Origin: Sphyrna mokarran
Taxonomy: Eukaryota
Direction: 5' to 3'
DNA: 64,000 nt
Assembly (NCBI GenBank): GCA_024679065.1
Contig: JAGIQG010000048.1
Location: 248,001 to 312,000 of the forward strand
Positions 2,619-64,000 of this stretch are shown piece after piece. The notes below the pieces were generated by a model. The model saw only the letters and a list, made by a program, of their open reading frames with translations. It was not told the origin of the DNA and did not search any database. The position numbers were made by a program, and so were the translations under genes. Every line of letters starts with the position of its first letter. Position 1 is the stretch's first letter.

Positions 2619-5352
2619 CACATTAATTAAAGAGGATCTGAATTAAACATTGCAAACACAGAGAACAACTGATTCAAATCCTCTAATGCTAAAAACACGA
2701 TGCAGAATATAAGTCTGGACCTTTTTTCATTATAATATTTAATAAGAATTAAACATAAGCTTCAGTTAGTATGAATTCTTCCATTCTGTCATTTATTCTT
2801 GCTGTAATTCTATTCTGTGTTTAGCATTAATGGGAGACTTGTTAAGTGCAGAGCTAATATTATTTTTATGGTATTTATAATATCATACTATTTTTATATA
2901 AAATCATCTTCTTGAATTTCAACCATTTAATTGTCACTGTAGCCAGTTTCTGTTGACATTTTACTACAATTCAAACACAATCATGTAACAAATTTGCTTG
3001 TGTCAGCGAATTCCGTCTGTCAGAAAACTGTTCAGTCTGTCAATTTTTTATGAACTGTTTGATTCTACCTGATCAAAAGGTCAAATTGCAACAAAGAAAA
3101 AAATCATCAATAAACATTTTAAATTAACCCAATGTTCATTTTAAAATTCCCTTTGCCTTTTAACTCTCTCCCCGACTGTCTCAAATCCCAAAAACTGGGC
3201 AATTTTTTTCCTCTAAAATGAGCACTTCAAATATAATAGATTCAGGGTAGTGTAATGTCCCTAACAGAGATACAGTGAATTGTAATTCATGTTTTAGTTT
3301 AATATGTAAGCATCAGTTAACATGAATAAAATGCCCTAACATATTTATTTTCCAATACTTTTCTGCTTTTTCCCCTACAAGAATATTCAAACGCAATTTT
3401 ATTTTCATTTAGTCCGAAGTGCTCAGTGAGTTGATACAATGCAAAAACAGTTGAGGGACGCCAAACCAATTCACAAATTGAGATGAGATAAGTAATTAAT
3501 TATCTCGGTATCTAATTAAAAAATACCGAGAACGAATCGTCTGGCTGCAATTGCATAGAAAAAATTATAATCGGATACAAAATTTTCCAAAAAGGAAATT
3601 ATTCTGCAAAACTCGTATTCCAGTGAATGCGAATTTAATCTGGGATATAACCATTAATGCAAAGTATCTTGTTCAACTGAGCGCTGCTGTGAAAACAGCG
3701 TGTTATCATTCAAATAGCTTCTGGAATTGTCCCAAAATATTTCCTGTCTGGAAAATGTTCTGATCATGTTAATTGCATGAACACAGCAAAGCTATTAAAG
3801 GGGATTCTTGCTAAATCAATGTAAAATAATCTGTGATGAATATGGAGTTATATTACCAATTAATGATTCTCTGATTTATATTAATTTTACTATTAAACTT
3901 GTTAATGAAAAGTTGGTATTTGCAGCAACGATTTAGTCTCCGAATGAGCGAATAAGTCAGGATTTACTTGAATTTGTTAAAATTTATAAAAACGCTGTGA
4001 TATCTTCCAGGTTTTTTCCCCCAAACTTGCTTGTTTTCTCCCGACAGGGATTTTCAAACTCAGATTGTTTATGTTCAACCAGAAAACATCTAAGCTCTCA
4101 ACGGCACCGTTAAAACACTATTTAAACAACGCAGCAGCAATAGTGCCACAAAACTAAACCATTTCACACATTTTAAACATTCACAGTGACCCACCCACAG
4201 AATCTCCTCCACAGAAACACAACAAAACACAATGAATCCGTCTCATAGAAAAGCAGCTCAATTATCTATTCAACACAATCAAACGTAACATTGCAAAATA
4301 AAAATCTCAATATCGAATCTAGCAAACCAGCTCTTAATTATTAAATCAAACAGAAATCTGGAATAATAGCAATAGCATTGCGAGAATATACCCAACAAAT
4401 TAGTATGGAAATTTTATTCCTATTGGGTCATATTTCAAACATATTTAAACATTTGGATGGTAGAAGTTCCAGCCATCAAATGCCACCGAGATTAAACATT
4501 GCAGATACCCCAAACTGTGACAAACTATGTTCTGAACGAGTGGTGTAAGCCATTATCACTAAAGATTTTTAAAACTAGGCATACAATAAAGCCTGCTTCA
4601 TTTCTGTCTGCAGTTCTGCGTCAAGCAGTGGCAAACAGCAGTATGTTTGTACTCAATCACAAAACGTGTCACAATTCAGTCTCACTGAGTTCAAACGACG
4701 CAGAAACACCAAATTAAGTCACAATTTTTACGTATTTAAAGTCACTCAGGCACAAACTCACCACTGAGAGACTGAACCCCGCTTCATGCAGAAGCAGCAC
4801 AGTTCTGCAAACACTTCCAGCAGAAAGAAATGTAACATTTACAGAAATGTTTACTGTAAATTCCAGCCAATTCGCCCACCACCAAACTAATCAATGTTTC
4901 CAATAAGCAGAAATATTGGACAGCATTGAGAGAGAGGGGAACATTTTCACTGGATCAATTTAGAAATGAGATTTTGTTTTTCAGTTTAGGTTTAAATTTC
5001 AAACACTTGTACAACCCGTAGCCACCAGATGTCACCAAGATTAAACATTGCAGAAACGCTGAATTGTTTAACAGATATTCGGCTTGTAAAGTCACCCAGC
5101 CACACAGTAACCTCAACAGACAAACACAAAATCACAACAATTTGGGATTGAAGCCCTCAGCAGCACCCACTGTCAAGGAAGAGCGGAATTCTAAAACCCC
5201 TTTGCAGCAGAATCATAGAAAACATTGTAAAAATTCTCAACGGAGAATCCACCGAACGCATATTTATGTTACCAAATGGATTATTAGTACGGATAAAAAT
5301 TATAAAACAAAGACACATTTAAACCAGTTATTCAATAAGTGATGGTTCTTAC

Positions 5353-5400
5353 CTGAAGTCACCGTCACCATGGTCCCTTGTCCCCAGTAATCGAAGTAGT
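5353..5400 (-). CDS. IGHJ: IgH J segment YFDYWGQGTMVTVTS (23-RSS 5401-5439; donor GTAAG follows)
   Basis: WGQG motif. GGTTATTGT-23-CACTGTG upstream and G|GTAAG splice donor. Confidence 0.97.
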
Positions 5401-5792
5401 CACAGTGTCACATTCCCTGGGCTGTGTCATACAATAACCGTCTCTGCACTAAATAGACACGCAAGCACCATTATTTTAAATATCCACAAACCCAAGGAAA
5501 AACAAAGTCATTTAATGTTCAGTAAATTATAATTTGGGATTTCTGGATACCATCCGATATTTATAAATAACCCTAATGTTTTATATTTCAGAGTAATTCA
5601 TGAACGTGTTATCGAAAACACCAATTAATAATTGAGAAATTATCAAGATTTTCCATGTTTATTTTTCTCAGGTGGTCTGTGCTGGATATAAATAATACTG
5701 TCCTGTGATTAAAGCTGGAAATTAAAAGTGACACTGATCCAGCTTCAATCAATCAGTGCTGAGGGGTTTTTGTATTGACAGTAACTGCTGTG

Positions 5793-5805
5793 CTATACCA
5801 GCTAT
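5793..5805 (-). CDS. IGHD: IgH D2 segment ATAGCTGGTATAG (5' 12-RSS 5806-5833; 3' 12-RSS 5765-5792)
   Basis: AGTATTTGT-12-CACTGTG | D | CACAGCA-12-ACAAAAACC on the minus strand. Confidence 0.95.
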
Positions 5806-6162
5806 CACAGTGAGACACAGCATGACAAATACTGAGACAGACTGTTAACTGTAAAATGCAGATAATTAATTTCACTGCAATTTCAAAAGCCTGTTTCCAG
5901 CTCGGTAAGAGTGAGATATTTCAATTTTTACTGGTCATGATATTGATAAAGGGGAATTAGAAACTTTTACACTGTGCACATTCAGCGTGCAAAACAACAA
6001 CAACAATAAAATTGAAGCATTTTACATCTTAAAACAAAAAACAATGCTGTTTCTACCTATTATTTTGTTGAACCCTCATTTAGTCTGGCATTCGGCAGTG
6101 GCATTGTAAGCAATGTCCCTCTGAGGTTTTTGTATGAGGATGTCGTTTTTCACAGCACAGTG

Positions 6163-12330: not shown

Positions 12331-13740
12331 CAGGTTAGAAGAAGAAGAAAATGTATCAAGCATTTCAAGATCATGGATTTCTCAAGAGATCTGTTTGAGT
12401 AATTCTCAGTCATAGATTGCAATTTATTGAATTACATTATTTTAGAAGCCTGTAACTCTGGCTGAGAGAAGACATTGGGCAGACGTGGACTTTATGCTGT
12501 GGAGTTAAGACAATGAACCATTTTGGAGAGACAGGACACAGACAGGAGAAAGACAGAGATAGAGATGAAACACGGGGAGATTTACAGGAACACATTTGCT
12601 GTGTCATTACATTTAGGATCAGAGGGATTATTCCTTAATTCTGAACATAGATATCATCATGATGTTTTTTTTCCTCACATAACTGATGAAGAAATAATGT
12701 TGAAAACAATCCTCACTGGAATCCGTTCATTGATTTGCATGGTTGTCTCTATTTCTGGGCTGTGTTGGTGGGGAAATATTTGCTGTGTTTTTATCAGTCA
12801 ACAATCTAATTCGGAATTTCTATTTTCGTATTTATTTACATAAATACCTCAGTGTTTACAATGAAATGTCCGGGACAACAAAACCAGATAAACCCTCACT
12901 TATTGATCAGTTTCAATTCAAAATTGTGGTTTATTTTAAGAATTTTAACGGTTGGTTCAAAATGAATCGAAACTTTTTGAACATTTATAACACCAGTTGC
13001 ATTTAATTCAAAGAAAATGATACATTCCATTTCAGAATTAGTTCTGAAAGTTCTGATGTCACAATTAATAAAGCATTTGTGAACAGCCAGATATTCCACT
13101 AAATGTTAATTTCATTGAGGATTTGATCTGTTTAAATTAGACAAGTTAAATTTTAAAAAAATCTGATGTCTGAAGTATTTCTGTCACAAATATTGATCAA
13201 ACTCACGTGAAGGAAGAGTAAAAAAATCTAATGTGCTTATCACTAAGAGATACAATTAGCTTTGCTGCCTCACAGGCGACAGGGAAGCGGGATCGATTCC
13301 AACACTGGGTGACTGTGTATGGTTTTCAAATTCTATCCATATCCATGTGGGTTTCCTCCGAGTGCTCCAGTTTCCTTTCACAGTCCCAGGATTTGCAGTT
13401 TAGGTGGATTGGCTGTGATAAATTGCCCCTTAGCTTCCAATGATGCGCAAAGTAGAATCATAGAATCCCTACAGTGCAGAAGGAGAACATTCATCAAGCC
13501 TGCACCAGTTACCCTGCAGAGCATCCTTCCCAGGTCCAGTGTAAATTGTCTTTGCTAAATTTCCTGTTAGTGTCCAATAATGTGTAGGTTTGGTGGATTA
13601 GCCTATGAATATGTGTGGTTGTCTGGATCTAATGAAGATTTGCCTAGGTGGGATGCTCTGCTGGAAAGCCCGCTGCAGGATTATTGGAATGAATGACCTC
13701 CCTGTTGAACTGTAGGGATTCTATGATTCCATGTTATTAC

Positions 13741-14421: not shown

Positions 14422-14954
14422 AATGGATCTACACAAATGGATCAATCCAATTTACCCATTTCTGTTACTGTTTAATCACAGTACAGTCCCTGAAAATATT
14501 GCTTGGAGTGAATACCATTTAAAACGTGTCTTTATTGTGGGAATCAAGTATTTATTGTGGGACTGGTTAAGTCCCATTTTATCCCTACATGTCCACGTTA
14601 ATCCGTCCTACGCAGTATTTGGCTCCAGTCCAATTTGCTCCCAAATACGCCAAGATATTTACAAGAAGCATCCGATGCTGTTTGTTCAGTAAGTCGAAAA
14701 TCTGTTTCCTCAGTGCTGAGCGATTGGCTGCAATCAAACTTCAAACTCTCAGCATTGTCAATGGAGCCTATTTCTGAACAAATCTGCCTAGTAACAGTAC
14801 TGGAGCTAACTTAATGATTTTTTTAAATCTGGAAAGCTGATGCATGCTTTCCATTTCCTTGGGAAAAGAAAGGTATCCCGATTCTCTGGCACCTTGTTAG
14901 TAACAATGATTTCCCCAACCCAATACAACACTGGGATGGGAAATAATTACCGGC

Positions 14955-16018
14955 AAATTTTGGCTAGCAGATAGAAGACAGAGGGTGGTGGTTGATGGGA
15001 GATATTCATCGTGGAGTTCGGTGACAAGTGGTGTACCTCAGGGGTCTGTTTTGGGGCCCCTGCTGTTGTAATTTTTATAAATGATCTGGATGAGGGTATT
15101 GAAGGATGGATTAGTAAATTTGCAGATGACACTAAAGTCGTGGAGTGGTAGATAGTGAAGAGGGGTGTTATAGTTTGCAGAGAGACTTGGACAAGTTGCA
15201 GAGCTGGGCCGAGAGGTGGCAAATGGAGTTTAATGTGGAAACGTGTGAGGTAATGCACTATGGCAGAAATAATAAATGTGTAGAGTATAGGGCTAATGGT
15301 AGGATTCTTAGTAGTGTTGATGAACAGAGGGATCTTGGTGTGTATGTGCATAGATCCCTGAAAGTAGGCAGTCAAGTCGAGAAGGTGGTTAAGAAGGCAT
15401 ATGGAGTCTTAGCTTTTATTGGTAGGGGGATTGAATTTCGGAGCCGCAACGTCATGTTGAACTGTACAAAACTCTAGTGCGGCCGCACTTGGAGTATTGT
15501 GTGCAGTTCTGGTCCCCGCATTATAAGAAAGATGTGGAGGCTTTGGAGAGGGTAAAGAGGAGGTTTACCAGGATGTTGCCTGGTATGGAGGGCAGGTCTT
15601 ATGAAGAGAGGCTGAGGGATTTGAGGTTGTTTTCGTTAGAAAGGAGGCGGCTAAGAGGGGACCTAATCGTAACATATAAGATGATTAGAGGTTTAGATAG
15701 GGTGGACAGTGATAGCGTTTTTTCTAGGATGGAGAAAGCTAGCACGAGGGGACACAGCTTTAAATTAAGGGGTGATAGTTATAGGACGGATATCAGAGGT
15801 AGGTTCTTTACCCAAAGGGTGGTTCGGGAGTGGAATGCCCTGCCTGCCGCAGTTGTAGATGCGCCAGGTTTGGTGGCGTTTAAGAGGTTAGTTGATAAGT
15901 ATATGGAAGAGAAGGGATTGGTTTAGTTTGGAGGGTCATTGCTTTTTATATTGGTCGGCGCAACATCGAAGGCTGAAGGGCCTGTTCTGTGCTATAATGT
16001 TCTATGTTCTATGTTCTA
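14955..16018 (+). mobile_element. 5'-truncated CR1 LINE (RT domain to tail), frameshifted
   Basis: [30 protein letters not shown] motifs and (TTCTATG)n tail. Confidence 0.95.
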
Positions 16019-16276
16019 AATTGTGAGAGTTGATTCAGAGAGGTGATATATCTTATACTGTATAAACATTGTTGTGTTTTATTTCACTTTATTCTTCCAG
16101 GGGACGCGGGAGTCACTGGAAAGAACACCATTTGTTTCCTGTGCTAAATTCCTTTTCAGCTGAGTGGTGTGTGAGGGCATCTTAGAAGGCATTGTCTAGT
16201 TATGTACATGGCGGCCCATCTTGAGTTACAGCCCGCTGAGACATGTAGGGACGGCAGATTTCCTTCACTGGGGAAT

Positions 16277-16992
16277 CAGGAGGTGGAGAGGGACCTGGGG
16301 ATCCTTGTGCACAAATCACAAAAACCCAGTCTGCAGCTACAGCAGGTGATCAAGAAGGTGAATGGGATGGTGGCCTTTATTGCGAGGGGGATAGAATATA
16401 AAAGCAGGGAGGTCTTGCTGTAACTGTACAGGGCACTGGTGAGGCACCAACTGGAGAACTGTGTGCAGTTTTGGTCCCCGTGTTTGTGTAAGGATATATT
16501 GGCCTTGGAGGGAGTACAGAGAACATTCACCAGGCTGATATCGGAGATGAGGGGTTAGTTTATGAGGGGAGATTGAATAGACTGGGTCTGTACTCGTTAG
16601 AGAAGGTTGAGGGGGGATCTTATAGAGACTTACAAGGTAATGAAGTGGATGGATAGGGTAGAGGTAGAGAGATTCTTCCCGCTTAGAAAGGAAACCAGAA
16701 TTCGAGGGCACAGCCTCAAAATAAGGGGGGGTGGTTTAGATCAGAGTTGAGGAAGGAACTTCTTCACTCAGAGGATGGTGAATCTGGAATTCTCTGCCTG
16801 TTAAAGTGGCAGAGGCTCCCTCGCTGAATATATTTAAGTCACAGGTAGATAGGTTTCTGATAGACAAGGGAATTACGGGGAGAAAGCAGGAAAGTGGAAC
16901 TGATCCACTTCAGATCAGCCATGATCTTATTGAATGGTGGGACAGGCTCGAGGGGCTGGATGGCCGACTCCTGCTCCTATTTCTGATATTCT
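16277..16992 (+). mobile_element. CR1 LINE 3' fragment, second subfamily (mirror about 50768-51484)
   Basis: ERDLGILVHKSQK..FIARGIEYKSREVLL. 3' UTR GATCAGCCATGATCTTATTGAATGG..CTCCTGCTCCTATTTC. Confidence 0.9.
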
Positions 16993-26959: not shown

Positions 26960-27113
26960 NNNNNNNNNNNNNNNNNNNNNNNNNNNNNNNNNNNNNNNNN
27001 NNNNNNNNNNNNNNNNNNNNNNNNNNNNNNNNNNNNNNNNNNNNNNNNNNNNNNNNNNNNNNNNNNNNNNNNNNNNNNNNNNNNNNNNNNNNNNNNNNNN
27101 NNNNNNNNNNNNN
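26960..27113. other. Assembly gap (154 N)
   Basis: N run. The mirror position 40666-40799 holds a (CA)n-rich microsatellite. Confidence 0.99.
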
Positions 27114-29073
27114 GAGGCGGTTGGGGTGGGGAGTGGACTATTCTGAATTCCCAATTATCCAATTCTATTTATAAACCATCACTTTGAACGAATTAGCACT
27201 GGATTGAACTGGTTTAGGAAAATCACATTACTCTTAACGTTTATTACACTGTTCTTTTTTCCCTCTGATGATATTCTCCAACTTAGTCCTTTCAATCCTC
27301 ACGTGTCTGAATTCTATCTGTAAATGTGGAACTGTTTGTAATAATGAAAATTTCTTTTCCTCTGAAAGATTCACTATTGTTACCCCAGGGAACAGAACTT
27401 TATGGATTCTGCCATGTCTGTTCCCCCTCCTTGGGAATAACAGCCCTTAGTCGGGTGGAGTCAATCATAGGATTTCCAATCCCTGTTTGCTCCACAGATC
27501 CCTGCGTCCCTCATCATGACAAAGAAACCTTCCCCAAAGCCCTAGAAACGATTGTTTCTTTATATCAGATCCCAGTCTGACCCCGAATCCAGCTCTTAGT
27601 GATACAATGGAGCCGGTTATTCAAATTCTAATGTTCTCATTCTCTATGATTATTTTGGACACCGTTACCCAATCCGTTGTGAATTAGAACCTGTACCTCA
27701 TCTTGCTTCATTCCACACCTGCCGGTTATTATTGGACAAGTTACTTTTTCTAGAATTATCACACGCACAAAAAATATTAATTTAAATGTTCTACCACGTT
27801 CTCTCTCTTGGAAATCTCACACACTGGTTTACATGACTCTCCCAGTCAGTTAATGTTATCATTGTGTTAGAATCTCTGTTTATATTGGATTAGATTCTGT
27901 CTCTGTAGTTAGAGATAATTTTTAATCATTTATAGGATGTGGGTAGCACTGAATCTCTTGCCCTTCTCTAATTGCCCCTGAGCTGCTATCTTGAATCGCT
28001 GCAGTGCATGTCCACCAGGCAATGTCACTGTTTATATCACACAAGGTCTGGCCAACCTCATGATACACCTGATCCTGATTGATCGTATTACAGAGGTTGT
28101 ACAACCTACACACAGTAGAAAATATTTAGGATGGTTACCATGGAACTGGGGAAGGTAACGGTTAAACAGAAATATTGCTCCTTCTCTGGAGAGTAGCAGA
28201 TGTTTCAACTCTTTGCATCTACAGAAATAAGAAGTCTGAGAATTACAGATGTAATTTTGAGCTGTCGGCAATATCTCCAGGGTCCCTTTTCGCCATTGTG
28301 TTCACAAATCAGCACACAACTGAGTCGTACATCAGGAAGTTTAGTAAAACACTGAGCAGATCAATTTCCGTCATTGGAAATGTGATTTATTCATTTTCCA
28401 ACAGATTTCTAGAGGCAGAGAAGTCAACGGCGGGAACAAAACAGTGGGGCATTTTGTACACAAGAGCGCACAGCAGAATGGCTGTCAATAAATAGTTACA
28501 TGTTAAATGTGAAACACGTTTGGTGTTTTCACGCATTCGTGGAAGGCAGGGATGGGCTGAAGGTTAGCACTGGGAAAACTGAAGGGGGAATTGCTAAAGG
28601 AGATCATTTCACCAAAGGGGGTTATTAGAAAATAGGATATTTAAAATAAATTAGCACGGAAATGTCTCTGATATTTGTTAGACAGAGAACCATAGAATTC
28701 CTACAGGTCAGGGAAAAAAGGCCATCTAGTCTACCGAGTTTGTATCCCACCCAGGTCCTTCTCTCCCGGTGAGCACCACACATTAACCAGGGCTAATCCA
28801 CATACTGTAAGGGAAAATAACGGGCAATTTTGCATGGTCAATCCAACTAATACTATGTGTTATAATATGAACAAGGGACAGTGTTTGTGCAGTGATACAG
28901 AGACAGGGCCGAATGCACCAGGTATGGATCCAGCACCTGTACTGATATGAATGCAGACTGGATCCAGGTCAGTCATTACTGAGAGAGTGTATACAGTATA
29001 TTACTAACCAGCATGGTGTTTTCTCATATAAACAGAGACATGCCACACTCAGTCTTGACAAAGACACTGTCTA

Positions 29074-29800
29074 TTCAACGGTAGGAGTCTTAGCTGTGTT
29101 GTAGAGCAGAAGGATCTCGGGGTCTGGGTCCATAGGACTCTTAAATCGGCCTCGCAGGTGGAGGATGTGGTCAAGAAGGCGTACGGTGTACTGGCCTTCA
29201 TTAATTGAGGAATAGAGTTTAGGAGTCAGGAGATAATGATGCAGCTCTATAAGACTCTTGTCAGACCCCAGTTGGAGTATTGTGCGCAGTTCTGGTCGCC
29301 TCATTATAGGAAGGATGTAGAGGCTATGAGAGAGTGCAGAGGAGATTTACAAGGATGCTGCCTGGATTGGGAGGCAGGCCTTATGAAGATAGGTTGAGGG
29401 AGCTGGGACTCTTCTCACTGGAGAGACGTAGGTTGAGAGGCGACCTGATAAGAGGTTTATAAAATGTTGAGAGGAATAGATAGGGTGGACTCTCAGAGAC
29501 TATTTCCCCGAGCTGAAATGGTCACTACGAGAGGACACAGATTTAAAGGTGCAGGGAAGCAAATACAAAGGAGATGTCAGGGGTAGGTTTTTCACTCAGA
29601 GGGTGGTGAGTGAATGGAACCGACTGCCGTCGGAGGTTGTTGAGGCAAACTCACTGGGGTCTTTTAAGAGACTTCTGGATGAGTAGATGGAAAAGAATAG
29701 GATAGGGGGTTATAGATAGGTCTGTGGATTGGTAGATGTGATCGGCGCAACTCGTGGGCCGAAGGGCCTGTTTGTGCTGTATTGTTCTATGTTCTATTCT
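29074..29800 (+). mobile_element. CR1 LINE 3' fragment, frameshifted
   Basis: [36 protein letters not shown] and TTCTATG tail. Confidence 0.92.
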
Positions 29801-30811
29801 AATATATGCAGAGAGAATGTGCTCTGTAATTTAAACTGAGACTGGTTCCAGCGCTATCAGGAAATAGGGACATGATCCAGTGTGATATAAACAGAGATGT
29901 GGCTGAGTGGAATAAAAAGTAAGGGAATGCAGAGTAAAGCAATAATTGAGAAAGGATGATGTGTAAAATGAACAGAGATATGGTTTGGTGCATGAATAAA
30001 GGAGAGAGCATCCAGTGCAATAAAAACTATCACCGAATGTAATTTTGTCTGATTCTGGCCATTGTATAATATAAACGGAGACAAATCCGATGCAGTAATT
30101 CCAAACCAAACCTCTAGATTGATATAAGCTTTGACAGGGGCAATTGCAGCAATAAATAAATCATGAAATAGAATACTAATTAGAGACAGGATATTATTCG
30201 GTATAAACAGGGAGGTGCAGCAGTGATTGAGATATTGTCAATGTTCCTTTATACCCGGCAGGTTCCAGCAATGTAATAACTGAGACTGAGCCTCGTGTGA
30301 TACAGACAGTAACATGTCCTGGTGTTTTATCAGGAGGGAGAGGGTCTAGTGAAGTAACAGCGCAGATATAGAGTTTCATGGCCTTAGACAAGAATTAATC
30401 CCGTTCTGTTATAACAGCCAGACTGAACGGTGTAATGTCAAATGAGGCTTGTTGCAATATAGTAACAACTGGGATTTTGCTGAGCACAGAATCAACTGAG
30501 AATTATTGCCATTTAATCTGAAATATGATTTCCTGTCATATAAATTGGGTCAGGTTTAAGATGGCCAAAGACTGAGTCTATTATAGAAATAACCGGGATG
30601 ATCATCCGTATCGTTTGTGTTAAAAAGCACTGATTCACTGCCATCTCCTGGACTAGCTTTGCTATTGTAGGTGTGGGGAAATGCTGATTTCAGTCTCTGT
30701 TTCTTTTTCTGTCCTGGGCTGTATACCCAGCTGGTAAAGGCCACCATATATTAGCAATCGCTAATACACTGAATTTACTGGTTTTCTAGAACATCATAGA
30801 AAGCAGGTAAT

Positions 30812-31060
30812 GGCCACGCACGCGTGCGCCTGGAGTCACTTCTGGGCCAAACTGGGGAATGATGGAAAGTTTCCTTTCCTGCTGGGCATTAGAGAATCTG
30901 ATACATTTCTTGTCAAGGCCTCAATTATGGAAATGGCCTTTAAAGTCAAAATTGCAATCTTAAAACTTTTTACGGTTGGATTCGAATATACATCTTGAGA
31001 GATTTGCCTACCCTCGGAATTACTCTCGCAGAGACATTGCCACTCTGCCACTGTCTCCCT
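30812..31060 (-). mobile_element. Deu-SINE (SacSINE1-like) remnant; mirror 36712-36960; another piece about 16100-16275 minus
   Basis: GGGAGACAGTGGCAGAGTGGCAATGTC head and Deu-like core CTAATGCCC..AGGAAAGGAAAC..CCATC.TT..GTGACTCCAG. Confidence 0.6.
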
Positions 31061-31194
31061 TTTAACATTGATAAAGTATTTACAGCAGTGAAGAAGGCCA
31101 TTTTGAAGCGTCATGTGTGTGTTGACTCTATAAAGGATCAATTCATCCAATAACAATCTGAAGCCCACAGTCCAGCATTTTGTTCATTTTCAGA

Positions 31195-33992: not shown

Positions 33993-34024
33993 GCTAAATC
34001 TGTACTTTGCTTCTGAATTCACAA

Positions 34025-35587: not shown

Positions 35588-35660
35588 AGGCTCCAGCAAG
35601 AATTGAACTCACGACCCCTGGTTTACAAGACCAGTGCTCTAACCACTGAGCTATGGAGCC
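35588..35660 (-). tRNA. tRNA-Thr(UGU), mirror copy
   Basis: Exact reverse complement of 32112-32184. Confidence 0.88.
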
Positions 35661-37971
35661 AAATGCTACAAGCTGGTTCCTGTATGTGTAGTGTTATCAG
35701 TGGGCTGTAGAACAGGATTGAGGTCGGAGATTTTTGATGAATGTGGGAATGTCTGACTTTTCCAGCTCCCGTTGCAAGTTCATCCAGCCGGAAGGTTTCG
35801 ATGTTGCTCCCTTCACAGATGCTGTGAGGCGTTTTGTTTTTCACTAAATGAAGAATTGAACAAATAGCTTATTCACTCCGTGACTGGGAATGGAAACAGT
35901 GTCACGGTGCCGATCCTGATCACTAGAACCTCAGTGACATACGCAGCGAAGGAGCTGAGAAAGGCCAAGAGTTGTCTTGAGCATGTTCCTTCACTGAATC
36001 AATTCATCCTGAACTGTGGAATTAAACAGAGATCACATCCAGTCACAAACAGAATGAACTGCAGTGAAGGACCATTTCAACTGCCGTGCTTAACCTTGTC
36101 TGATTCCCAATAATCCGCCAGAAATGAGAAATGAATTTGCTCAGAATCTTCACTTCAAGGCATGAGGAAAGATTGTGTTCAAACAGACACTAACTGCCTG
36201 AACCTAAGGCAGAATGGAACATTAGGAGACTGGATGCAGGAGCAAAATACCAGAGTAATTCCAGAGATCAGAAACTTCAGTGAGGAATGTATTTTGGAGA
36301 GGTTCGGACTAATTTCCTTGACAGGAAGTTGCTGTTGTGACTTTGATGAGGCATTCAAACTCCCGAGGGGTCTTGACAGAGTAGATCGAGGGAAACTGTT
36401 TAATGACAGAAGGATCTTGACACACAGGGCGCGGGTTGAAGTAAATTGGTGAAAGGAGCATAGAGACATCACAAAGAACATCTTCAGACAGTGAGTGATC
36501 CATGTCTGGGATGTGCTGTTTGAGAGTGTGGTACAGGCAGCATCAATGAATGGTTTCAAAATGGGATTGGAGAATTGTCTGAAAATGAACAAAATGCTGG
36601 ACTGTGGGCTTCAGATTGTTATTGGATGAATTGATCCTTTATAGAGTCAACACACACATGACGCTTCAAAATGGCCTTCTTCACTGCTGTAAATACTTTA
36701 TCAATGTTAAAAGGGAGACAGTGGCAGAGTGGCAATGTCTCTGCGAGAGTAATTCCGAGGGTAGGCAAATCTCTCAAGATGTATATTCGAATCCAACCGT
36801 AAAAAGTTTTAAGATTGCAATTTTGACTTTAAAGGCCATTTCCATAATTGAGGCCTTGACAAGAAATGTATCAGATTCTCTAATGCCCAGCAGGAAAGGA
36901 AACTTTCCATCATTCCCCAGTTTGGCCCAGAAGTGACTCCAGGCGCACGCGTGCGTGGCCATTACCTGCTTTCTATGATGTTCTAGAAAACCAGTAAATT
37001 CAGTGTATTAGCGATTGCTACTATATGGTGGCCTTTACCAGCTGGGTATACAGCCCAGGACAGAATAAGAAACAGAGACTGAAATCAGCATTTCCCCACA
37101 CCTACAATAGCAAAGCTAGTCCAGGAGATGGCAGTGAATCAGTGCTTTTTAACACAAACGATACGGATGATCATCCCAGTTATTTCTATAATGGACTCAG
37201 TCTTTGGCCATCTTAAACCTGACCCAGTTTATATGACAGGAAATCATATTTCAGATTAAATGGCAATAATTCTCAGTTGATTCTGTGCTCAGCAAAATCC
37301 CAGTTGTTACTATATTGCAACAAGCCTCATTTGACATTACACCGTTCAGTCTGGCTGTTATAACAGAACGGGATTAATTCTTGTCTAAGGCCATGAAACT
37401 CTATATCTGCGCTGTTACTTCACTAGACCCTCTCCCTCCTGATAAAACACCAGGACATGTTACTGTCTGTATCACACGAGGCTCAGTCTCAGTTATTACA
37501 TTGCTGGAACCTGCCGGGTATAAAGGAACATTGACAATATCTCAATCACTGCTGCACCTCCCTGTTTATACCGAATAATATCCTGTCTCTAATTAGTATT
37601 CTATTTCATGATTTATTTATTGCTGCAATTGCCACTGTCAAAGCTTATATCAATCTAGAGGTTTGGTTTGGAATTACTGCATCGGATTTGTCTCCGTTTA
37701 TATTATACAATGGCCAGAATCAGACAAAATTACATTCGGTGATAGTTTTTATTGCACTGGATGCTCTCTCCTTTATTCATGCACCAAACCATATCTCTGT
37801 TCATTTTACACATCATCCTTTCTCAATTATTGCTTTACTCTGCATTCCCTCACTTTTTATTCCACTCAGCCACATCTCTGTTTATATCACACTGGATCAT
37901 GTCCCTATTTCCTGATAGCGCTGGAACCAGTCTCAGTTTAAATTACAGAGCACATTCTCTCTGCATATATT

Positions 37972-38704
37972 AGAATAGAACATAGAACATAGAACAATAC
38001 AGCACAAACAGGCCCTTTGGCCCACGAGTTGCGCCGATCACATCTACCAATCCACAGACCTATCTATAACCCCCTATCCTATTCTTTTCCATATACTCAT
38101 CCAGAAGTCTCTTAAAAGACCCCAGTGAGTTTGCATCAACAACCTCCGACGGCAGTCGGTTCCATTCACTCACCACCCTCTGAGTGAAAAACCTACCCCT
38201 AACATCTCCTCTGTATTTGCTTCCCTGCACCTTAAATCTGTGTCCTCTCGTACTGACCATTTCAGCTTGGGGAAATAGTCTCTGAGAATCCACCCTATCT
38301 ATTCCTCTCAACATTTTATAAACCTCTATCATGTCGCCTCTCAACCTACATCTCTCCAGGGAGAAGAGTCCCAGCTCCCTCAAAATATCTTCATAAGGCC
38401 TGCCTCCCAATCCAGGCAGCATCCTTGTAAATCTCCTCTGCACTCTCTCAATAGCCTCTACATCCTTCCTATAGTGAGGCGACAAGAACTGCGCACAATA
38501 CTCTAAGTGGGGTCTGAGAAGAGTCTTATAGAGCTGCATCATTATCTCCTGACTCCTAAACTCTATTCCTCAATTAATGAAGGCCAGTACACCGTACGCC
38601 TTCTTGACCACATCCTCCACCTGCGAGGCCAATTTAAGAGTCCTATGGACCCAGACCCCGAGATCCTTCTGCTCTACAACACAGCTAAGACTCCTACCGT
38701 TGAA
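37972..38704 (-). mobile_element. CR1 LINE 3' fragment (mirror; 160-aa ORF 38060-38542)
   Basis: MMQLYKTLLRPHLEYCAQF..FFTQRVVSEWNRLP. Confidence 0.92.
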
Positions 38705-40679: not shown

Positions 40680-40785
40680 GCACGCACACACGTACTCACA
40701 CACACTCACTCACACACACACACAGACACACACTCACACTCACACACAGACACACACAGACACACACACACTCACACACACACAC
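40680..40785. repeat. (CA)n-rich microsatellite
   Basis: CACACA/CACAGA/CACTCA units. Confidence 0.9.
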
Positions 40786-49700: not shown

Positions 49701-51741
49701 CCATACCGTCCTGTTAAGAGGGAGTTCTAGGATTTGATCCAAAGACAATGAAAGAAGGATGATATAGTTCCACATCAGGTATATAACTGACTGGGAGGGG
49801 AATTTATAAGTGATATTCCCTAGTAACTGTGACCATGTTCCTTCTAGATGGTAACTGTCACGTGGTTGGAAGGTGCTGCCTGAGGAATCTTGATGAGGTT
49901 CGGAAGTGAAACTTGTAGATCATGACTCTCTCTGGTGGAGGGAGAGAATATTTGCAAATGTTATACCGGTTGCTTTGTCCTGAATGGAATGAAGATTTTT
50001 GAATGTTGTTCGAACTGCACTTACTCAAATAAGCGGAAAGAACCATTTTAGTCTCCTGATATGTGTCATGTAGGTGGTGCAGAGATTTGAGGAGTCAGGA
50101 GGTGAGTTACCCACAGCATGTTGACCTGATATTGCAGCCGGAGTATTCACATACCGAACTAATGCCAGCCAATGGTATCCCAGCGAGGTTTGTAGTCTGT
50201 GATTCAGTGTCACAATATCATTATATGACAAGGAGTAGACTTTTCATTTTTGCAAATGGTCATTTCCTGGTGCCAATATTACCAATAATCTTCAATTCAC
50301 AAAAATAAATTAATATTTCACCAATTATTATCAATATTTTATCTGATGCCAATTTAATTGCAGTATATTTAACGTAAGATATTAGGATTCAATTGCATTG
50401 GCTTTTCTGCCCCAGAATTCAGCGGGAGATTGAATGAAATCAGGACAAAATAGTAGTAGCTACCCAGCAGCCTCTGAACTTTATTGACAAGTAATCACCT
50501 CATCATCACACAGAAACTCTTGATATATAACGAGTATGTGACCATTTTAAAAATGGCTGTATGACTGAAACTATCTCTATCTAATATAAATTTATAGAAG
50601 CTTCAAAATCCAGATTGATTTTTACACGGTTCTGACAAATAATTTAAAGCTTCAAGTTGTCCAGTGACTTTCACAATATTTGAGTTGCCATATCATTTAT
50701 TGATTCATTCTTCACTGATTTGTGTAACGTTCTGTTGAGTGATTTTGTTACTCTAGAAAGGCGACATTAGAACATCAGAAACAGGAGCAGGAGTCGGCCA
50801 TCCAGCCCCTCGAGCCTGTCCCACCATTCAATAAGATCATGGCTGATCTGAAGTGGATCAGTTCCACTTTCCCGCTTTCTCCCCGTAATTCCCTTGTCTA
50901 TCAGAAACCTATCTACCCGTGACTTAAATATATTCAGCGAGGGAGCCTCTGCCACTTTAACAGGCAGAGAATTCCAGATTCACCATCCTCTGAGTGAAGA
51001 AGTTCCTTCCTCAACTCTGATCTAAACCACCCCCCCTTATTTTGAGGCTGTGCCTCGAATTCTGGTTTCCTTTCTAAGCGGGAAGAATCTCTCTACCTCT
51101 ACCCTATCCATCCCCTTCATTATCTTGTAAGTCTCTATAAGATCCCCCCTCAACCTTCTCTAACGAGTACAGACCCAGTCTATTCAATCTCCCCTCATAA
51201 ACTAACCCCTCATCTCCGATATCAGCCTGGTGAATGTTCTCTGTACTCCCTCCAAGGCCAATATATCCTTACACAAACACGGGGACCAAAACTGCACACA
51301 GTTCTCCAGTTGGTGCCTCACCAGTGCCCTGTACAGTTACAGCAAGACCTCCCTGCTTTTATATTCTATCCCCCTCGCAATAAAGGCCACCATCCCATTC
51401 ACCTTCTTGATCACCTGCTGTAGCTGCAGACTGGGTTTTTGTGATTTGTGCACAAGGATCCCCAGGTCCCTCTCCCCCTCCTGATTCCCCAGTGAAGGAA
51501 ATCTGCCGTCCCTACATGTCTCAGCGGGCTGTAACTCAAGATGGGCCGCCATGTACATAACTAGACAATGCCTTCTAAGATGCCCTCACACACCCCTCAG
51601 CTGAAAAGGAATTTAGCACAGGAAACAAATGGTGTTCTTTCCAGTGACTCCCGCGTCCCCTGGAAGAATAAAATGAAATAAAACACAACAATGTTTATAC
51701 AGTATAAGATATATCACCTCTCTGAATCAACTCTCACAATT

Positions 51742-52800
51742 TAGAACATAGAACATAGAACATTACAGCACAGAACAGGCCCTTCGGCCTTCGATGTTGT
51801 GCCGACCAAAATAAAAAGCAATGCCCCTCCAAACTAAACCATCCCCTTCTCTTCCATATACTTATCAATTAACCTCTTAAACGCCACCAAACTTGGCGCA
51901 TCTACAACTGCGGCAGGCAGGGCATTCCACTCCCTAATCACTCTTTGAGTAAAGAACCTACCTCTGATATCCGTCCTATAACTCATACCCCTTAATTTAA
52001 AGCTGTGTCCCCTCGTGCTAGCTTCTCCATCCTAGGAAAAAGGCTATCACTGTCCACCCTATCTAAACTCTAATCATCTTATATGCTTCAATAAGATCCC
52101 CTCTTAGCCGCCTCCTTTCTAACGAAAACAACCTCAAATCCTTCAACCTCTCTTCATAGGACCTGCCCTCCATACCAGGGCAACATCCTGGTAAACCTCC
52201 TCTGTACCCTCTCCAATGCCTCCACATCTTTCTTATAATGTGGGGACCAGAACTGCACACAATACTCCAAGTGCGCCGCACTAGAGTTTTGTACAGTTGC
52301 AACATGACGTTGCGGCTCCGAAATTCAATCCCCCTACCAATAAAAGCTAAGACTCCATATGCCTTCTTAACAACCTTCTCGACTTGACTGCTTACTTTCA
52401 GGGATCTATGCACATACACACCAAAATCCCTCTGTTCATCAACACTACTAAGAATCCTACCATTAGTCCTATACTCTATACATTTATTCTTCCTGCCATA
52501 GTGCATTACCTCACACTTTTCCACATTAAACTCCATTTGCCACCTCTCGGCCCAGCTCCGCAACTTGTCCAAGTCTCTCTGCAAACTATAACACCCCTCT
52601 TCACTATCTACCACTCCTCCGACTTTGGTGTCATCCGCAAATTTACTAATCCATACTTCAATACCCTCATCCAGATCATTTATAAAAATTACAAACAGCA
52701 GGGGCCCCAAAACAGATCCCTGAGGTACACCACTTGTCACCGAACTCCACGATGAATAACTCCCATCAACCACCACCCTCTGTCATCTATCTGCTAGCCA
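51742..52800 (-). mobile_element. 5'-truncated CR1 LINE (mirror; 237-aa RT ORF 52063-52776)
   Basis: SGVPQGSVLGPLLFVIFINDLD..KFADDTK. Confidence 0.95.
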
Positions 52801-53342
52801 AAATTTACCGGTAATTATTTCCCATCCCAGTGTTGTATTGGGTTGGGGAAATCATCATTGTTACTAACAAGGTGCCAGAGAATCGGGATACCTTTCTTTT
52901 CCCAAGGAAATGGAAAGCATGCATCAGCTTTCCAGATTTAAAAAAATCATTAAGTTAGCTCCAGTACTGTTACTAGGCAGATTTGTTCAGAAATAGGCTC
53001 CATTGACAATGCTGAGAGTTTGAAGTTTGATTGCAGCCAATCGCTCAGCACTGAGGAAACAGATTTTCGACTTACTGAACAAACAGCATCGGATGCTTCT
53101 TGTAAATATCTTGGCGTATTTGGGAGCAAATTGGACTGGAGCCAAATACTGCGTAGGACGGATTAACGTGGACATGTAGGGATAAAATGGGACTTAACCA
53201 GTCCCAGAATAAATACTTGATTCCCACAATAAAGACACGTTTTAAATGGTATTCACTCCAAGCAATATTTTCAGGGACTGTACTGTGATTAAACAGTAAC
53301 AGAAATGGGTAAATTGGATCGATCCATTTGTGTAGATCCATT

Positions 53343-53700: not shown

Positions 53701-56700
53701 ACTTCCAAATAAATGTCATTCTGATTTATTTCATAGTAAACTTGCTAGCTTTCGGTGTTTGTGCCTTCGTCAGGCGAATGAGGTGTTCTGGTCTGCAATA
53801 GCACACATATCAGCATAGACAGTTACAGATTGCTGATTAGAATGTGAATCCTTACACCTAACCTGCTATTCAAGTCTTAAAGTGGCTGACAATGTGAGTG
53901 GAAGGAGCACTGCGCACAGATTAGAGAGATGTGTATTGTCTCCAGACAGCACAGTAAGTGAGGTTTTTTGCTAACCCAGGCAAGTCGTGGGGGTTACAGA
54001 TAGCGTGACATGAAGCTAAGATCGTAATAACATGGAATCATAGAATCCCTACAGTTCAACAGGGAGGTCATTCATTCCAATAATCCTGCAGCGGGCTTTC
54101 CAGCAGAGCATCCCACCTAGGCAAATCTTCATTAGATCCAGACAACCACACATATTCATAGGCTAATCCACCAAACCTACACATTATTGGACACTAACAG
54201 GAAATTTAGCAAAGACAATTTACACTGGACCTGGGAAGGATGCTCTGCAGGGTAACTGGTGCAGGCTTGATGAATGGTCTCCTTCTGCACTGTAGGGATT
54301 CTATGATTCTACTTTGCGCATCATTGGAAGCTAAGGGGCAATTTATCACAGCCAATCCACCTAAACTGCAAATCCTGGGACTGTGAAAGGAAACTGGAGC
54401 ACTCGGAGGAAACCCACATGGATATGGATAGAATTTGAAAACCATACACAGTCACCCAGTGTTGGAATCGATCCCGCTTCCCTGTCGCCTGTGAGGCAGC
54501 AAAGCTAATTGTATCTCTTAGTGATAAGCACATTAGATTTTTTTACTCTTCCTTCACGTGAGTTTGATCAATATTTGTGACAGAAATACTTCAGACATCA
54601 GATTTTTTTAAAATTTAACTTGTCTAATTTAAACAGATCAAATCCTCAATCAAATTAACATTTAGTGGAATATCTGGCTGTTCACAAATGCTTTATTAAT
54701 TGTGACATCAGAACTTTCAGAACTAATTCTGAAATGGAATGTATCATTTTTTTTGAATTAAATGCAACTGGTGTTATAAATGTTCAAAAAGTTTCGATTC
54801 ATTTTGAACCAACCGTTAAAATTCTTAAAATAAACCACAATTTTGAATTGAAACTGATCAATAAGTGAGGGTTTATCTGGTTTTGTTGTCCCGGACATTT
54901 CATTGTAAACACTGAGGTATTTATGTAAATAAATACGAAAATAGAAATTCCGAATTAGATTGTTGACTGATAAAAACACAGCAAATATTTCCCCACCAAC
55001 ACAGCCCAGAAATAGAGACAACCATGCAAATCAATCAACGGATTCCAGTGAGGATTGTTTTCAACATTATTTCTTCATCAGTTATGTGAGGAAAAAAAAC
55101 ATCATGATGATATCTATGTTCAGAATTAAGGAATAATCCCTCTGATCCTAAATGTAATGACACAGCAAATGTGTTCCTGTAAATCTCCCTGTGTTTCATC
55201 TCTATCTCTGTCTTTCTCCTGTCTGTGTCCTGTCTCTCCAAAATGGTTCATTGTCTTAACTCCACAGCATAAAGTCCACGTCTGCCCAATGTCTTCTCTC
55301 AGCCAGAGTTACAGGCTTCTAAAATAATGTAATTCAATAAATTGCAATCTGTGACTGAGAATTACTCAAACAGATCTCTTGAGAAATCCATGATCTTGAA
55401 ATGCTTGATACATTTTCTTCTTCTTCTAACCTGGTGGTAAGGATTCAATGTGGAACTTTTCCCTATATTTAGCCAGTGCTGTCCCTGTCCTTGGAGTATT
55501 TGACCTGACAGAGTAGAGGAATATTTACTCTGCATCTCAACTCATTGTATTTGGCTTACGGACGTTTGATGCATCTTTGTCAAGGAAGATTTAATCCGTA
55601 TCTAATCTCTGCCATACCTGGCCTGGGTGTGTTTTGTGGAACTGTGCAGGCGGCTCTTTCCCCTATTCCTAACGCTAATTGAAACCTGCCTCCTGAATCT
55701 CTGAAGGGAGAGAGCAGGAGAGTTTTTACATAGAAGAGCATCCATGCCCTTTCTGCCTTAATATTGTTTGAACAGATTTGTAGACAGAGTTTCACTCTGT
55801 TTATAGACAGTAGACTGTTCTTGGAATGTTTGAATCGAAGGCGATTCACTTTGCATCCAAATCATGCTATTCCTGCTTTGGGAGTTATTCATTTGCCAGA
55901 GCAGAGGGGAAATTCCGCAGCTAACCCCGTGTTACTCCTGTCCTGTAAGTTTTCGATGGGACAGTAAACTGTCTCTACAAATTTGATGGGGATTGAACCA
56001 GTCTCTTTATATTACAGTAAATGTAGCCTGTGTCAGCTTATATGATAAGCCACATCCACTAGACCCTTTTTATCTAGCACGTAGAATTTTAAGTCTCTAC
56101 ACATAGTAAATTGGATGTATTATCTGTACTAAATTAGACACTGTTCCGGTTTATGTTCCTGTTTATATTAAACTAGATGTTAATTGTGTTTATATTATTT
56201 TAGATCTGTCTCTGTTTGTATCAAACTAGATGCAGTTTTACTTCTGTAATTGACCGTCTCCATGTTTTTATTGGATTGGGACATGGGCTCAGTTTTTATT
56301 GCACTGGTCAAGGGCAGTAATGATGAAACTAGCTGGCAGAACACAAATCTCTGCATCCTTCTACAAATGCAAACTCTATCAGGTTTTGAACAGTGGAAAA
56401 GAAGAAGCGATATCTGAAATCTACTTCTGCTGACTGCATTGAAAATGGATATCAAGTCTTGTGCACTGTCAATGAAAAACAAAAGAAAAGCAAATTACAG
56501 CACAATAAAATACTGGTGAACCAATATGCCTGGTTCTGCATCTTGCCTGATTGCAATCTTTTTTATCCCAACATATGATTTGTTTTTCTCACAAAACAGT
56601 GGAGTAAAACCAACATAATTCAAAGAGAGGCGTAGTTAAGTGCAGGAACAAAATTGACCCCGTCTAGTGAGAGAAATACAGGGTCAGTATCAAATATACA

Positions 56701-60716: not shown

Positions 60717-61192
60717 ATGAGGTCGGCGATTTGTCTCAGTTTGTTGCTGACTTTCTTATCCGGTGAGTAGTTTATTTTCATTGTCCAAGACTTTCATTTC
60801 ACTGTCTCAATGTTAGTCTATCTCTGGAATGCTCCAGAATCATTCCACCAGGATTAACCCTTAGAATTTTTGATTTTTTATTTACAGGTGTCCAGTCGGA
60901 GGTTGTGTTGACCCAGAAAGAGGCAGAGACCGTCCGTCCCGGAGCATCCCTGAAACTGACCTGTAAAACCAGCGGCTTTAACCTTGGCGACTATTACATG
61001 GCTTGGATCCGGCAGGTTCCCGGACAGGGACTGGAGTGGCTGGTTAGCTACTATAGTTCATCCAGCAACGATTACGCCCCCGGAATTGAGGGCCGATTTA
61101 CGGCGTCCAAAGACACTTCAAACAACATCTTCTCTTTGGAGATGTTGCGTCTAAGGATTGAAGACACCGCCATCTATTACTGTGCAAGAGAC
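60717..61192 (+). CDS. IGHV: Immunoglobulin heavy-chain V gene segment, IgM-type, germline (leader exon 60717-60762, intron 60763-60887, V exon 60888-61192)
   Basis: Leader and V exon match the left copy base for base by eye. Open frame, intact splice sites. Confidence 0.97.
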
Positions 61193-61231
61193 CACAGCGA
61201 GAGGAACCAGGGCTGGAACTGTACAAGGACA
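61193..61231 (+). promoter_or_regulatory. V 23-RSS, right cluster
   Basis: CACAGCG-23-ACAAGGACA. Confidence 0.92.
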
Positions 61232-61585
61232 ACTGCAGAGGGAATTCAGCATCTTCCTCCGTAACCTGAAGGTCATCGTCTGCTTCAAATGCAATATGAT
61301 CGACTGTGGTCAGAACCAAACTATAATCGCCTTTAAATAAAGTAACACAAAGCATTTCACAGTAAAACTTCACAAACTCACGGATATACCTGGTGAGCTT
61401 TTCACCGACTTTATATTCATTGGAGTGTCAGCAGGAACGACACTCCAATATGTTAGTCTTCTTAATATTTCTGACAGACTGTGTTATAGAAACATTTCGC
61501 ATTAGAGCAAAACTAATGGTCCATTTGAAGTGAATATTGAACAGTAGGACTGAATGCAGTTTTTGTATGGCTTTGTGTCACTGTG

Positions 61586-61601
61586 ATACTATATAGTGGG
61601 T
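61586..61601 (+). CDS. IGHD: IgH D1 segment ATACTATATAGTGGGT (12-RSS 61558-61585; 22-RSS 61602-61639)
   Basis: AGTTTTTGT-12-CACTGTG | D | CACTGTG-22-ACAAAAACC. Confidence 0.95.
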
Positions 61602-61965
61602 CACTGTGCTGTGAAAAACGACATCCTCATACAAAAACCTCAGAGGGACATTGCTTACAATGCCACTGCCGAATGCCAGACTAAATGAGGGTTCAACAAA
61701 ATAATAGGTAGAAACAGCATTGTTTTTTGTTTTAAGATGTAAAATGCTTCAATTTTATTGTTGTTGTTGTTGTTTTGCACGCTGAATGTGCACAGATAGT
61801 GTAAAAGTTTCTAATTCCCCTTTATCAATATCATGACCAGTAAAAATTGAAATATCTCACTCTTACCGAGCTGGAAACAGGCTTTTGAAATTGCAGTGAA
61901 ATTAATTATCTGCATTTTACAGTTAACAGTCTGTCTCAGTATTTGTCATGCTGTGTCTCACTGTG

Positions 61966-61978
61966 ATGGCTGGTATAG
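61966..61978 (+). CDS. IGHD: IgH D2 segment ATGGCTGGTATAG (12-RSS 61938-61965; 12-RSS 61979-62006)
   Basis: AGTATTTGT-12-CACTGTG | D | CACAGCA-12-ACAAAAACC. Confidence 0.95.
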
Positions 61979-62371
61979 CACAGCAGTTACTGTCAATACA
62001 AAAACCCCTCAGCACTGATTTGATTGAAGCTGGATCAGTGTCACTTTTAAATTCCAGCTTTAATCACAGGACAGTATTATTTATATCCAGCACAGACCAC
62101 CTGAGAAAAATAAACATGGAAAATCTTGATAATTTCTCAATTATTAATTGGTGTTTTCGATAACACGTTCATGAATTACTCTGAAATATAAAACATTAGG
62201 GTCATTTATAAATATCAAATGGTATCCAGAAATCCAAAATTATAATTTACTGAACATTAAATGACTTTGTTTTTCCTTGGGTTTGTGGATATTTAAAATA
62301 ATGGTGCTTGCGTGTCTATTTAGTGCAGAGACGGTTATTGTATGACACAGCCCTGGGAATGTGACACTGTG

Positions 62372-62419
62372 ACTACTTCGATTACTGGGGACAAGGGACC
62401 ATGGTGACGGTGACTTCAG
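62372..62419 (+). CDS. IGHJ: IgH J segment YFDYWGQGTMVTVTS (23-RSS 62333-62371)
   Basis: GGTTATTGT-23-CACTGTG, WGQG motif, G|GTAAG donor. Confidence 0.97.
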
Positions 62420-64000
62420 GTAAGAACCATCACTTACTGAATAACTGGTTTAAATGTGTCTTTGTTTTATAATTTTTATCTGTACTAATAATCCATTTGG
62501 TAACATAAATATGCGTTCGGTGGATTCTCCGTCGAGAATTTTTACAACGTTTTCTATGATTCTGCTGCAAAGGGGTTTTAGAATTCCGCTCTTCCTTGAC
62601 AGTGGGTGCTGCTGAGGGCTTCAATCCCAAATTGTTGTGATTTTGTGTTTGTCTGTTGAGGTTACTGTGTGGCTGGGTGACTTTACAAGCCGAACATCTG
62701 TTAAACAATTCAGCGTTTCTGCAATGTTTAATCTTGGTGACATCTGGTGGCTACGGGTTGTACAAGTGTTTGAAATTTAAACCTCAACTTAAAAACAAAA
62801 TCTCATTTCTAAATTGATCCAGTGAAAATGTTCCCCTCTCTCTCAATGCTGTCCAATATTTCTGCTTATTGGAAACATTGATTAGTTTGGTGGGGGGCGA
62901 ATTGGCTGGAATTTACAGTAAACATTTCTGTAAATGTTACATTTCTTTCTGCTGGAAGTGTTTGCAGAACTGTGCTGCTTCTGCATGAAGCGGGGTTCAG
63001 TCTCTCAGTGGTGAGTTTGTGCCTGAGTGACTTTAAAGACGTAAAAATTGTGACTTAATTTGGTGTTTCTGCGTCGTTTGAACTCAGTGAGACTGAATTG
63101 TGACACGTTTTGTGATTGAGTACAAACATACTGCTGTTTGCCACTGCTTGACGCAGAACTGCAGACAGAAATGAAGCAGGCTTTATTGTATGCCTAGTTT
63201 TAAAAATCTTTAGTGATAATGGCTTACACCACTCGTTCAGAACATAGTTTGTCACAGTTGGGGGTATCTGCAATGTTTAATCTCGGTGGCATTTGATGGC
63301 TGGAACTTATACCATCCAAATGTTTAAATATGTTTGAAATATGACCCAATAGGAATAAAATGTGATAAAATTTCCATACTAATTTGTTGGGTATATTCTC
63401 GCAATGCTATTGCTATTATTCCAGATTTCTGTTTGATTTAATAATTGTTTAAGAGCTGGTTTGCTAGATTCGATATTGAGATTTTTATTTTGCAATGTTA
63501 CATTTGATTGTGTTGAATAGATAATTGAGCTGCTTTTCTATGAGACGGATTCATTGTGTTTTGTTGTGTTTCTGTGGAGGAGATTCTGTGGGTGGGTCAC
63601 TGTGAATGTTTAAAATGTGTGAAATGGTTTAGTTTTGTGGCACTATTGCTGCTGCGTTGTTTAAATAGTGTTTTAACGGTGCCGTTGAGAGCTTAGATGT
63701 TTTCTGGTTGAACATAAACAATCTGAGTTTGAAAATCCCTGTCGGGAGAAAACAAGCAAGTTTGGGGGAAAAAACCTGGAAGATATCACAGCGTTTTTAT
63801 AAATTTTAACAAATTCAAGTAAATCCTGACTTATTCGCTCATTCGGAGACTAAATCGTTGCTGCAAATACCAACTTTTCATTAACAAGTTTAATAGTAAA
63901 ATTAATATAAATCAGAGAATCATTAATTGGTAATATAACTCCATATTCATCACAGATTATTTTACATTGAGTTAGCAAGAATCCTCTTTAATAGCTTTGC

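Follow-up and report, generated by a model that had tools for sequence, protein, structure and literature searches.

We examined a 64,000-nucleotide stretch of the Sphyrna mokarran genome assembly GCA_024679065.1 (contig JAGIQG010000048.1, positions 248,001 to 312,000 of the forward strand), hereafter called the window and numbered from its first letter. It contains two immunoglobulin heavy-chain (IgH) units, each made of one variable (V), two diversity (D1 and D2) and one joining (J) segment, which lie head-to-head in the two arms of a large inverted repeat. Judged from its sequence, this structure is probably a young and real inverted duplication of an IgH cluster, a reading to which we assign a probability of about 0.65. 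The finding bears on how cartilaginous fish multiply their heavy-chain miniloci, and on how a B cell comes to express only one of them.

Nineteen inverted pairs were detected in the window. Sixteen of them (I1-I16) tile positions 3786-33325 against positions 64000-34447 in order, while the other three are repeat-derived, about 205 nt long and 89-91% identical. The innermost pair (29783-33325 and 34447-37989) leaves 1121 nt between its two members. A blastn comparison of the left part of the window against the reverse-complemented right part yielded two colinear blocks, separated by nothing other than a run of Ns. The first block (3786-26959 against 64000-40800) showed 98.92% identity over 23,208 columns, with 209 mismatches and 21 gap openings; the second (27114-33325 against 40665-34447) showed 99.05% identity over 6,222 columns, with 46 mismatches and 7 gap openings. 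The overall identity of the arms is about 99.0%. The left arm extends at least from 3786 to 33325 and the right arm from 34447 to 64000, where it runs off the end of the window. The left arm starts at 3786 because its right-arm partner has reached this end, and the length of at least 29.5 kb for each arm is a minimum for the same reason. With inverted arms exceeding 10 kb and a short spacer between them, the structure has the layout of a large palindrome. An earlier note on this DNA had claimed arms of at least 29.5 kb, about 99% identical, around a spacer of 1121 bp; the comparison bore this out, down to an exact match of the junctions.

The spacer (33326-34446, 1121 bp) is asymmetric, and the repeat comparison showed that it is a mosaic of interspersed-repeat pieces of the kinds also present in the arms. 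The largest is a 3' piece of a retroelement (about 615 bp, 33380-33997), roughly 86% like copies found 3.5 kb away, one in each arm (29194-29797 and 37978-38584). Shorter repeat fragments occupy 34215-34277 and 34338-34439. Neither mirror symmetry nor adapter-like content was detected within 33326-34446, and both arm/spacer junctions are located in contiguous sequence, away from the assembly gap.

The two V-D1-D2-J units were defined by reading the sequence, by a scan for recombination signal sequences (RSS) and by exact matching between the arms. On the minus strand of the left arm, a leader exon (7047-7002, ATG at 7047-7045) is followed by a GT...AG intron and by an open VH exon (6876-6572) with the conserved Cys, Trp and YYC residues. 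Next come the V 23-RSS (6571-6533, CACAGCG-23-ACAAGGACA), D1 (6178-6163) between a 5' 12-RSS (6206-6179) and a 3' 22-RSS (6162-6125), D2 (5805-5793) with a 12-RSS on each side (5833-5806 and 5792-5765), and finally the J 23-RSS (5439-5401) and JH (5400-5353), which ends at a GT donor (5352-5351). The plus strand of the right arm carries the same series: leader exon (60717-60762), intron, VH exon (60888-61192) and V 23-RSS (61193-61231), then D1 (61586-61601) and D2 (61966-61978) with their four RSS (61558-62006 together), then the J 23-RSS (62333-62371) and JH (62372-62419). Both units point away from the centre, which confirms the outward transcription that had been proposed. All segments of a unit are in one orientation, with spacings of 393, 357 and 392 bp, and the order V-23 / 12-D1-22 / 12-D2-12 / 23-J obeys the 12/23 rule throughout the series.

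The VH exons of both arms matched the Pfam V-set domain with an E value of 2.5e-17. A protein search made with the V exon alone, without the spliced leader, gave 47 matches, the closest being to Chiloscyllium punctatum (79%), to Scyliorhinus torazame (78%) and to an Ig heavy chain V region of Heterodontus francisci (73%). These are all shark VH sequences, which indicates an elasmobranch whose own proteins are absent from the database searched. Each arm has the features expected of a cartilaginous-fish minilocus, namely an elasmobranch-related VH with a split leader, followed by two D and one JH at spacings of about 400 bp. The earlier description of an open V, both Ds, J and complete RSSs in each arm was confirmed for the presence of all these parts and for the spacer lengths. 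It needs correction for the signals themselves: CAC begins every one of the six RSS of a unit and the spacers are of the right length, yet several RSS depart from the consensus. The V RSS deviates from it at one of seven heptamer positions and three of nine nonamer positions, and it was missed by the consensus scan because of the three nonamer mismatches; the D2 3' heptamer reads CACAGCA. Similarly, the term "intact miniloci" applies to V-D-D-J only; no constant (C) exon was found in the window. Eight open frames tested downstream of the left J (within positions 1-5339) had no match to an Ig domain, and the C exons presumably lie beyond the window.

The differences between the arms consist of 255 substitutions (159 transitions and 96 transversions) and 28 indels, 21 of which involve a single base and the largest 10 bp. 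A CpG context was found for 70 of the 255 substitutions, and 62 of these 70 are transitions. In all, 6.3% of CpG sites differ, as opposed to 0.65% of other sites. Such a tenfold excess points to germline decay of methylated CpG and not to sequencing error, which argues that the arms are two separately evolved copies and not one copy read twice. The CpG-transition signature rules out sequencing error as the origin of most of the differences; it could have contributed in two hot spots located in repeats.

The density of differences is uneven along the arms: counted in 59 bins of 500 bp, they give an index of dispersion of 4.6. The two hot spots reach about 37 differences per kb, against 3-10 elsewhere, and contain half of the indels (14 of 28). 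The first (14786-16285, mirrored at about 51500-53000; 56 differences, 10 of them indels) is a fragment of a repeat bearing a reverse transcriptase. In its right-arm copy a frame is open for 239 amino acids and matches RVT_1 with an E value of 9e-15, whereas the left-arm copy is frameshifted. The second (29194-29797, mirrored at 37978-38584; 22 differences) is a 3' piece of a retroelement, and the arms are most alike inward of it. Both hot spots lie in high-copy retroelement pieces that may be called LINE-like (LINE, long interspersed nuclear element). They could reflect errors of consensus polishing in such repeats, or sequence exchange with repeat copies elsewhere. Using the repeat copy of the spacer as an outgroup gave a mixed picture: among the substitutions of the hot spot at 29194-29797 it agreed with the left arm at 11, with the right arm at 6 and with neither at 1, while over the aligned part of the first hot spot (15409-16019) the corresponding numbers were 8, 14 and 7. 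Outside the hot spots, the number of differences per kb is 6.5 in the outer third of the arms, 9.7 in the middle and 2.9 in the inner 3.5 kb, which contains 12 differences and in which the likeness of the arms is 2-3 times that seen elsewhere.

Within the Ig units the arms are nearly indistinguishable. The leader exon, the V exon with its RSS, D1 and its two flanking RSS, the pair of RSS around D2 and the J coding segment are identical, so that five of the six RSS do not differ. The differences that were found are located in the leader intron (6964, 6971 and 6995), in D2 (5803) and in the spacer of the J RSS (5418), exactly the three places for which arm-specific markers had been announced. 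From V through D1 the arms share a 971-bp tract without any difference. Three longer tracts without differences (1168, 1132 and 1039 bp) occur elsewhere in the arms, which puts this one fourth in length and rules out special conservation of V-D1.

It must be asked whether the palindrome exists in the animal or was created during sequencing and assembly; we consider it likely that it exists. A chimera produced by the folding back of a single molecule is ruled out by the divergence of the arms, by the CpG signature and by the 1121-bp spacer made of genomic repeats. Reads that fold back through a missing adapter or through joined template and complement strands leave no such spacer. Moreover, the 6.2 kb between the assembly gap and the spacer contain 46 substitutions and 7 indels, and differences occur as near as 731 bp from the spacer. 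With differences continuing this close to the centre, the arms are not one molecule read twice. A false duplication is the other artefact to consider. In its favour, the window's only run of Ns (26960-27113, 154 N) falls within the left arm, at 6.2 kb from the spacer. In that case each haplotype of the animal would have most of this region once, and the left contig could be the other haplotype's version of the right arm, broken at the same spot that is hard to assemble and scaffolded in reverse at the gap beside a much smaller real inverted repeat or a chimeric contig end. A retained haplotig of this type would cover the outer 23 kb of the left arm. Real mutations between the arms suit alleles as well as paralogues, and the lack of large indels or repeat insertions (10 bp at most) is also what alleles would show. 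The contig ends at the gap align to opposite flanks of a single right-arm interval, although the same is expected if a difficult sequence breaks every copy. Retained haplotigs in long-read assemblies do typically appear as two copies about 1% apart, without large structural difference and with a gap nearby. Unlike them, the structure described here has its junctions away from the gap, a natural-looking spacer and 6.2 kb of inverted copy within one contig. This segment, already a diverged inverted copy (99.05% identical) joined contiguously to the spacer, would need a separate explanation if the outer arm were a haplotig.

The gap itself also speaks for continuity. Its flanks are colinear with the right arm and therefore the order and the orientation across it fit the mirror, and to the left of it the mirror goes on colinearly with the same divergence. 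The matching right-arm interval measures 134 bases, and the closeness of the gap size (154) to this value suggests that the gap was sized from evidence physically spanning it. The gap contains no coding feature, so that no reading frame is at issue. The simplest account is that the left contig truly continues across the gap, and we regard false duplication as an unlikely explanation, though one that carries real weight. Several observations do weigh against a real inverted duplication. The contig that carries the centre covers just 6.2 kb of the left arm, and the other 23 kb depend on the gap having been bridged correctly in scaffolding. Of the sampled words of the palindrome centre, a fraction of only 0.44 was present in the best sequencing run. 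The two junction patterns found no match among metagenome contigs, a blank that means little. The hot spots, rich in 1-bp indels and located in high-copy repeats, show that the consensus is not error-free. Finally, a divergence of 0.9% could be allelic if the locus were very polymorphic.

If the inverted duplication is real, it may further be asked whether the palindrome is functional, its arms being kept alike by ongoing gene conversion and its geometry being used through inversional joining by RAG, through shared control of activation, or both. The geometry that had been claimed was confirmed from the coordinates: the V 23-RSS of one arm runs in the same direction as the D1 5' 12-RSS of the other, and a 12/23-legal join between them is an inversion. 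The V of one arm is permitted to join D1 or D2 of the other in this way, and the same orientation applies to every 3' RSS of one arm paired with a compatible 5' RSS of the other. A join across the arms would invert the approximately 55 kb lying between and would set one V before the D1 of the other cluster. Inversional joining between clusters has a documented precedent in the light-chain clusters of zebrafish (PMC3014032). Favouring conversion are the greater likeness of the inner 3.5 kb and the 971-bp V-D1 tract. However, this tract ranks just fourth in length, and the arms, with 1% overall divergence and free CpG decay, are a long way from homogenised. A join across the arms, over about 55 kb, would compete with a partner RSS only about 400 bp away in the same cluster. 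Exchange of V would also be silent, V, D1 and J being the same in the two arms; inter-arm joining as a whole would be nearly silent and would change the protein through the single D2 base only. PMC2435157 and PMC5192425 describe shark joining as staying within miniloci. We consider a functional palindrome of this kind improbable.

The resemblance to the palindromes of sex chromosomes, whose arms are homogenised by conversion, proved to fit poorly. The palindromes of primate sex chromosomes share with the present structure arms of tens of kb, a short unique spacer and gene pairs in mirror image. Their arms are about 99.97% identical as a result of gene conversion. An arm identity of about 99.9% or more would be expected of a homogenised palindrome; here it is 99.0% and is accompanied by ordinary CpG decay (6.3% of CpG sites against 0.65% of others). 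This plain mutational signature indicates that most of the arm is diverging freely.

The organization of each unit is that known for the IgM miniloci of cartilaginous fish, described for the nurse shark (PMC2435157) and reviewed in PMC5192425: one VH with a split leader, two D and one JH, all in one orientation. V and J of such clusters carry a 23-RSS, and their C exons lie several kb downstream. The spacings of 393, 357 and 392 bp agree with the distance of about 400 bp between the segments of nurse-shark miniloci given in PMC2435157. According to that paper, rearrangement stays within the minilocus, with one possible exception among 97 intermediates, and the review PMC5192425 agrees that joining takes place within miniloci. 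The nurse-shark loci are reported (PMC2435157) to be at least 120 kb apart, with their mutual arrangement described as unknown; the present units are 53.7 kb apart, and are head-to-head mirror images including the whole upstream region. In zebrafish, VL-JL-CL clusters of opposite orientation likewise allow 12/23-legal joining by inversion, with the intervening DNA retained (PMC3014032). Joining was demonstrated there by complementary DNA (cDNA), whereas the present case is a geometric possibility only, concerns the heavy chain and would add no diversity. Full-text literature yielded no palindromic or inverted pair of IgH clusters in cartilaginous fish; the supplements and figures of PMC12227049 and PMC8692893, which lie outside the text consulted, could show cluster orientations. 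IgH genes in clusters are known, as are segmental duplication and joining by inversion; what these full-text searches did not find in print is a mirror-image pair of heavy-chain miniloci.

We propose the following history for the inverted duplication. One heavy-chain minilocus of the IgM type, together with about 26 kb of upstream DNA, would have been copied in reverse orientation, and we infer that duplication, rather than another route, gave rise to the structure. The product would be a divergent pair of germline V-D1-D2-J units, placed head-to-head at a distance of 53.7 kb, with a repeat-rich spacer of 1.1 kb at the centre. Since then the arms would have diverged mostly by normal germline mutation, with some extra similarity left beside the centre. 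Each unit would behave as an ordinary cluster, in which RAG joins V, D1, D2 and J by deletion within the unit, and the rearranged product would be spliced to C exons located outside the window; the two units presumably rearrange independently. At the mutation rate typical of vertebrates, the 0.65% divergence at non-CpG sites would correspond to an age of a few million years, and to several times more if elasmobranch rates are slower.

A broader proposal is that the IgH cluster family of this elasmobranch grows by repeated inverted duplication, leading to zig-zag series of palindromes joined head-to-head and tail-to-tail, whose twins, with one mirror-symmetric upstream region of 54 kb in common, would be co-regulated and might exchange V by RAG-mediated inversion. 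Template switching during replication and breakage-fusion-bridge cycles are known to produce inverted duplications and triplications with alternating head-to-head and tail-to-tail junctions and short spacers. We hold this general scheme to be rather unlikely. More modestly, inverted duplication including the upstream region is probably one of the ways in which the cluster family grows, provided that the present example is real. It would then represent a recent birth of a cluster, with breakpoints still legible, by inverted duplication of a unit with its whole upstream region. It would also provide two loci that are identical in V, D1 and J and yet distinguishable at a handful of marker positions, and hence a natural experiment on heavy-chain exclusion, on whether twin loci open and rearrange together or independently, and on joining between clusters. 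The functional consequence of the duplication is probably small. Should the structure be an artefact, it would serve as a warning for counts of IgH clusters taken from this assembly.

The two start codons are 53.7 kb apart and the region between them is mirror-symmetric, so that the common upstream region proposed for both V genes is indeed present. No other gene could be recognised in it, either among the frames tested or by comparison with Rfam. The window has 95 open frames with a length of 85 amino acids or more, and the translations of 24 were tested, of which two matched V-set, one matched RVT_1 and 21 had no match; the Rfam comparison, which covered positions 1-32100, gave no match. Only two exact copies of the Ig octamer ATGCAAAT are present in the window (12733-12740 on the minus strand and 55024-55031 on the plus strand); they mirror each other, each some 5.7 kb upstream of the V of its arm. 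Two occurrences against 5.2 expected are not above chance. A TATA-like sequence (TATTTAAATA, 7146-7137) is present 5' of the left leader exon, and the proximal promoter contains no octamer. A weak match to an RSS with a 12-nt spacer (CACGGTG ... ACTAGAACC) is mirrored at 31842-31869 and 35903-35930, 1.5 kb from the spacer of the palindrome, and is probably due to chance.

A few other features were noted. A scan of the whole window for tandem repeats scoring at least 80 returned a single one, a CA-type microsatellite in the right arm (40681-40785). In the J-C intron, about 1.1 kb downstream of J, an isolated RSS-like site is found at 4182-4219 (mirrored at 63567-63604), with the heptamer CACAGTG, a 22-nt spacer and ACAGAAACA; no coding segment is evident beside it. 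The first 800 positions of the window are a strongly G-skewed tract of low complexity, with a GC skew of +0.5 to +0.7 on the plus strand. This tract lies 4.6-5.3 kb downstream of the left J, within the J-C intron of that cluster, and its mirror would fall past the end of the window. It is C-rich on the sense strand of the cluster, a polarity opposite to that of mammalian switch regions.

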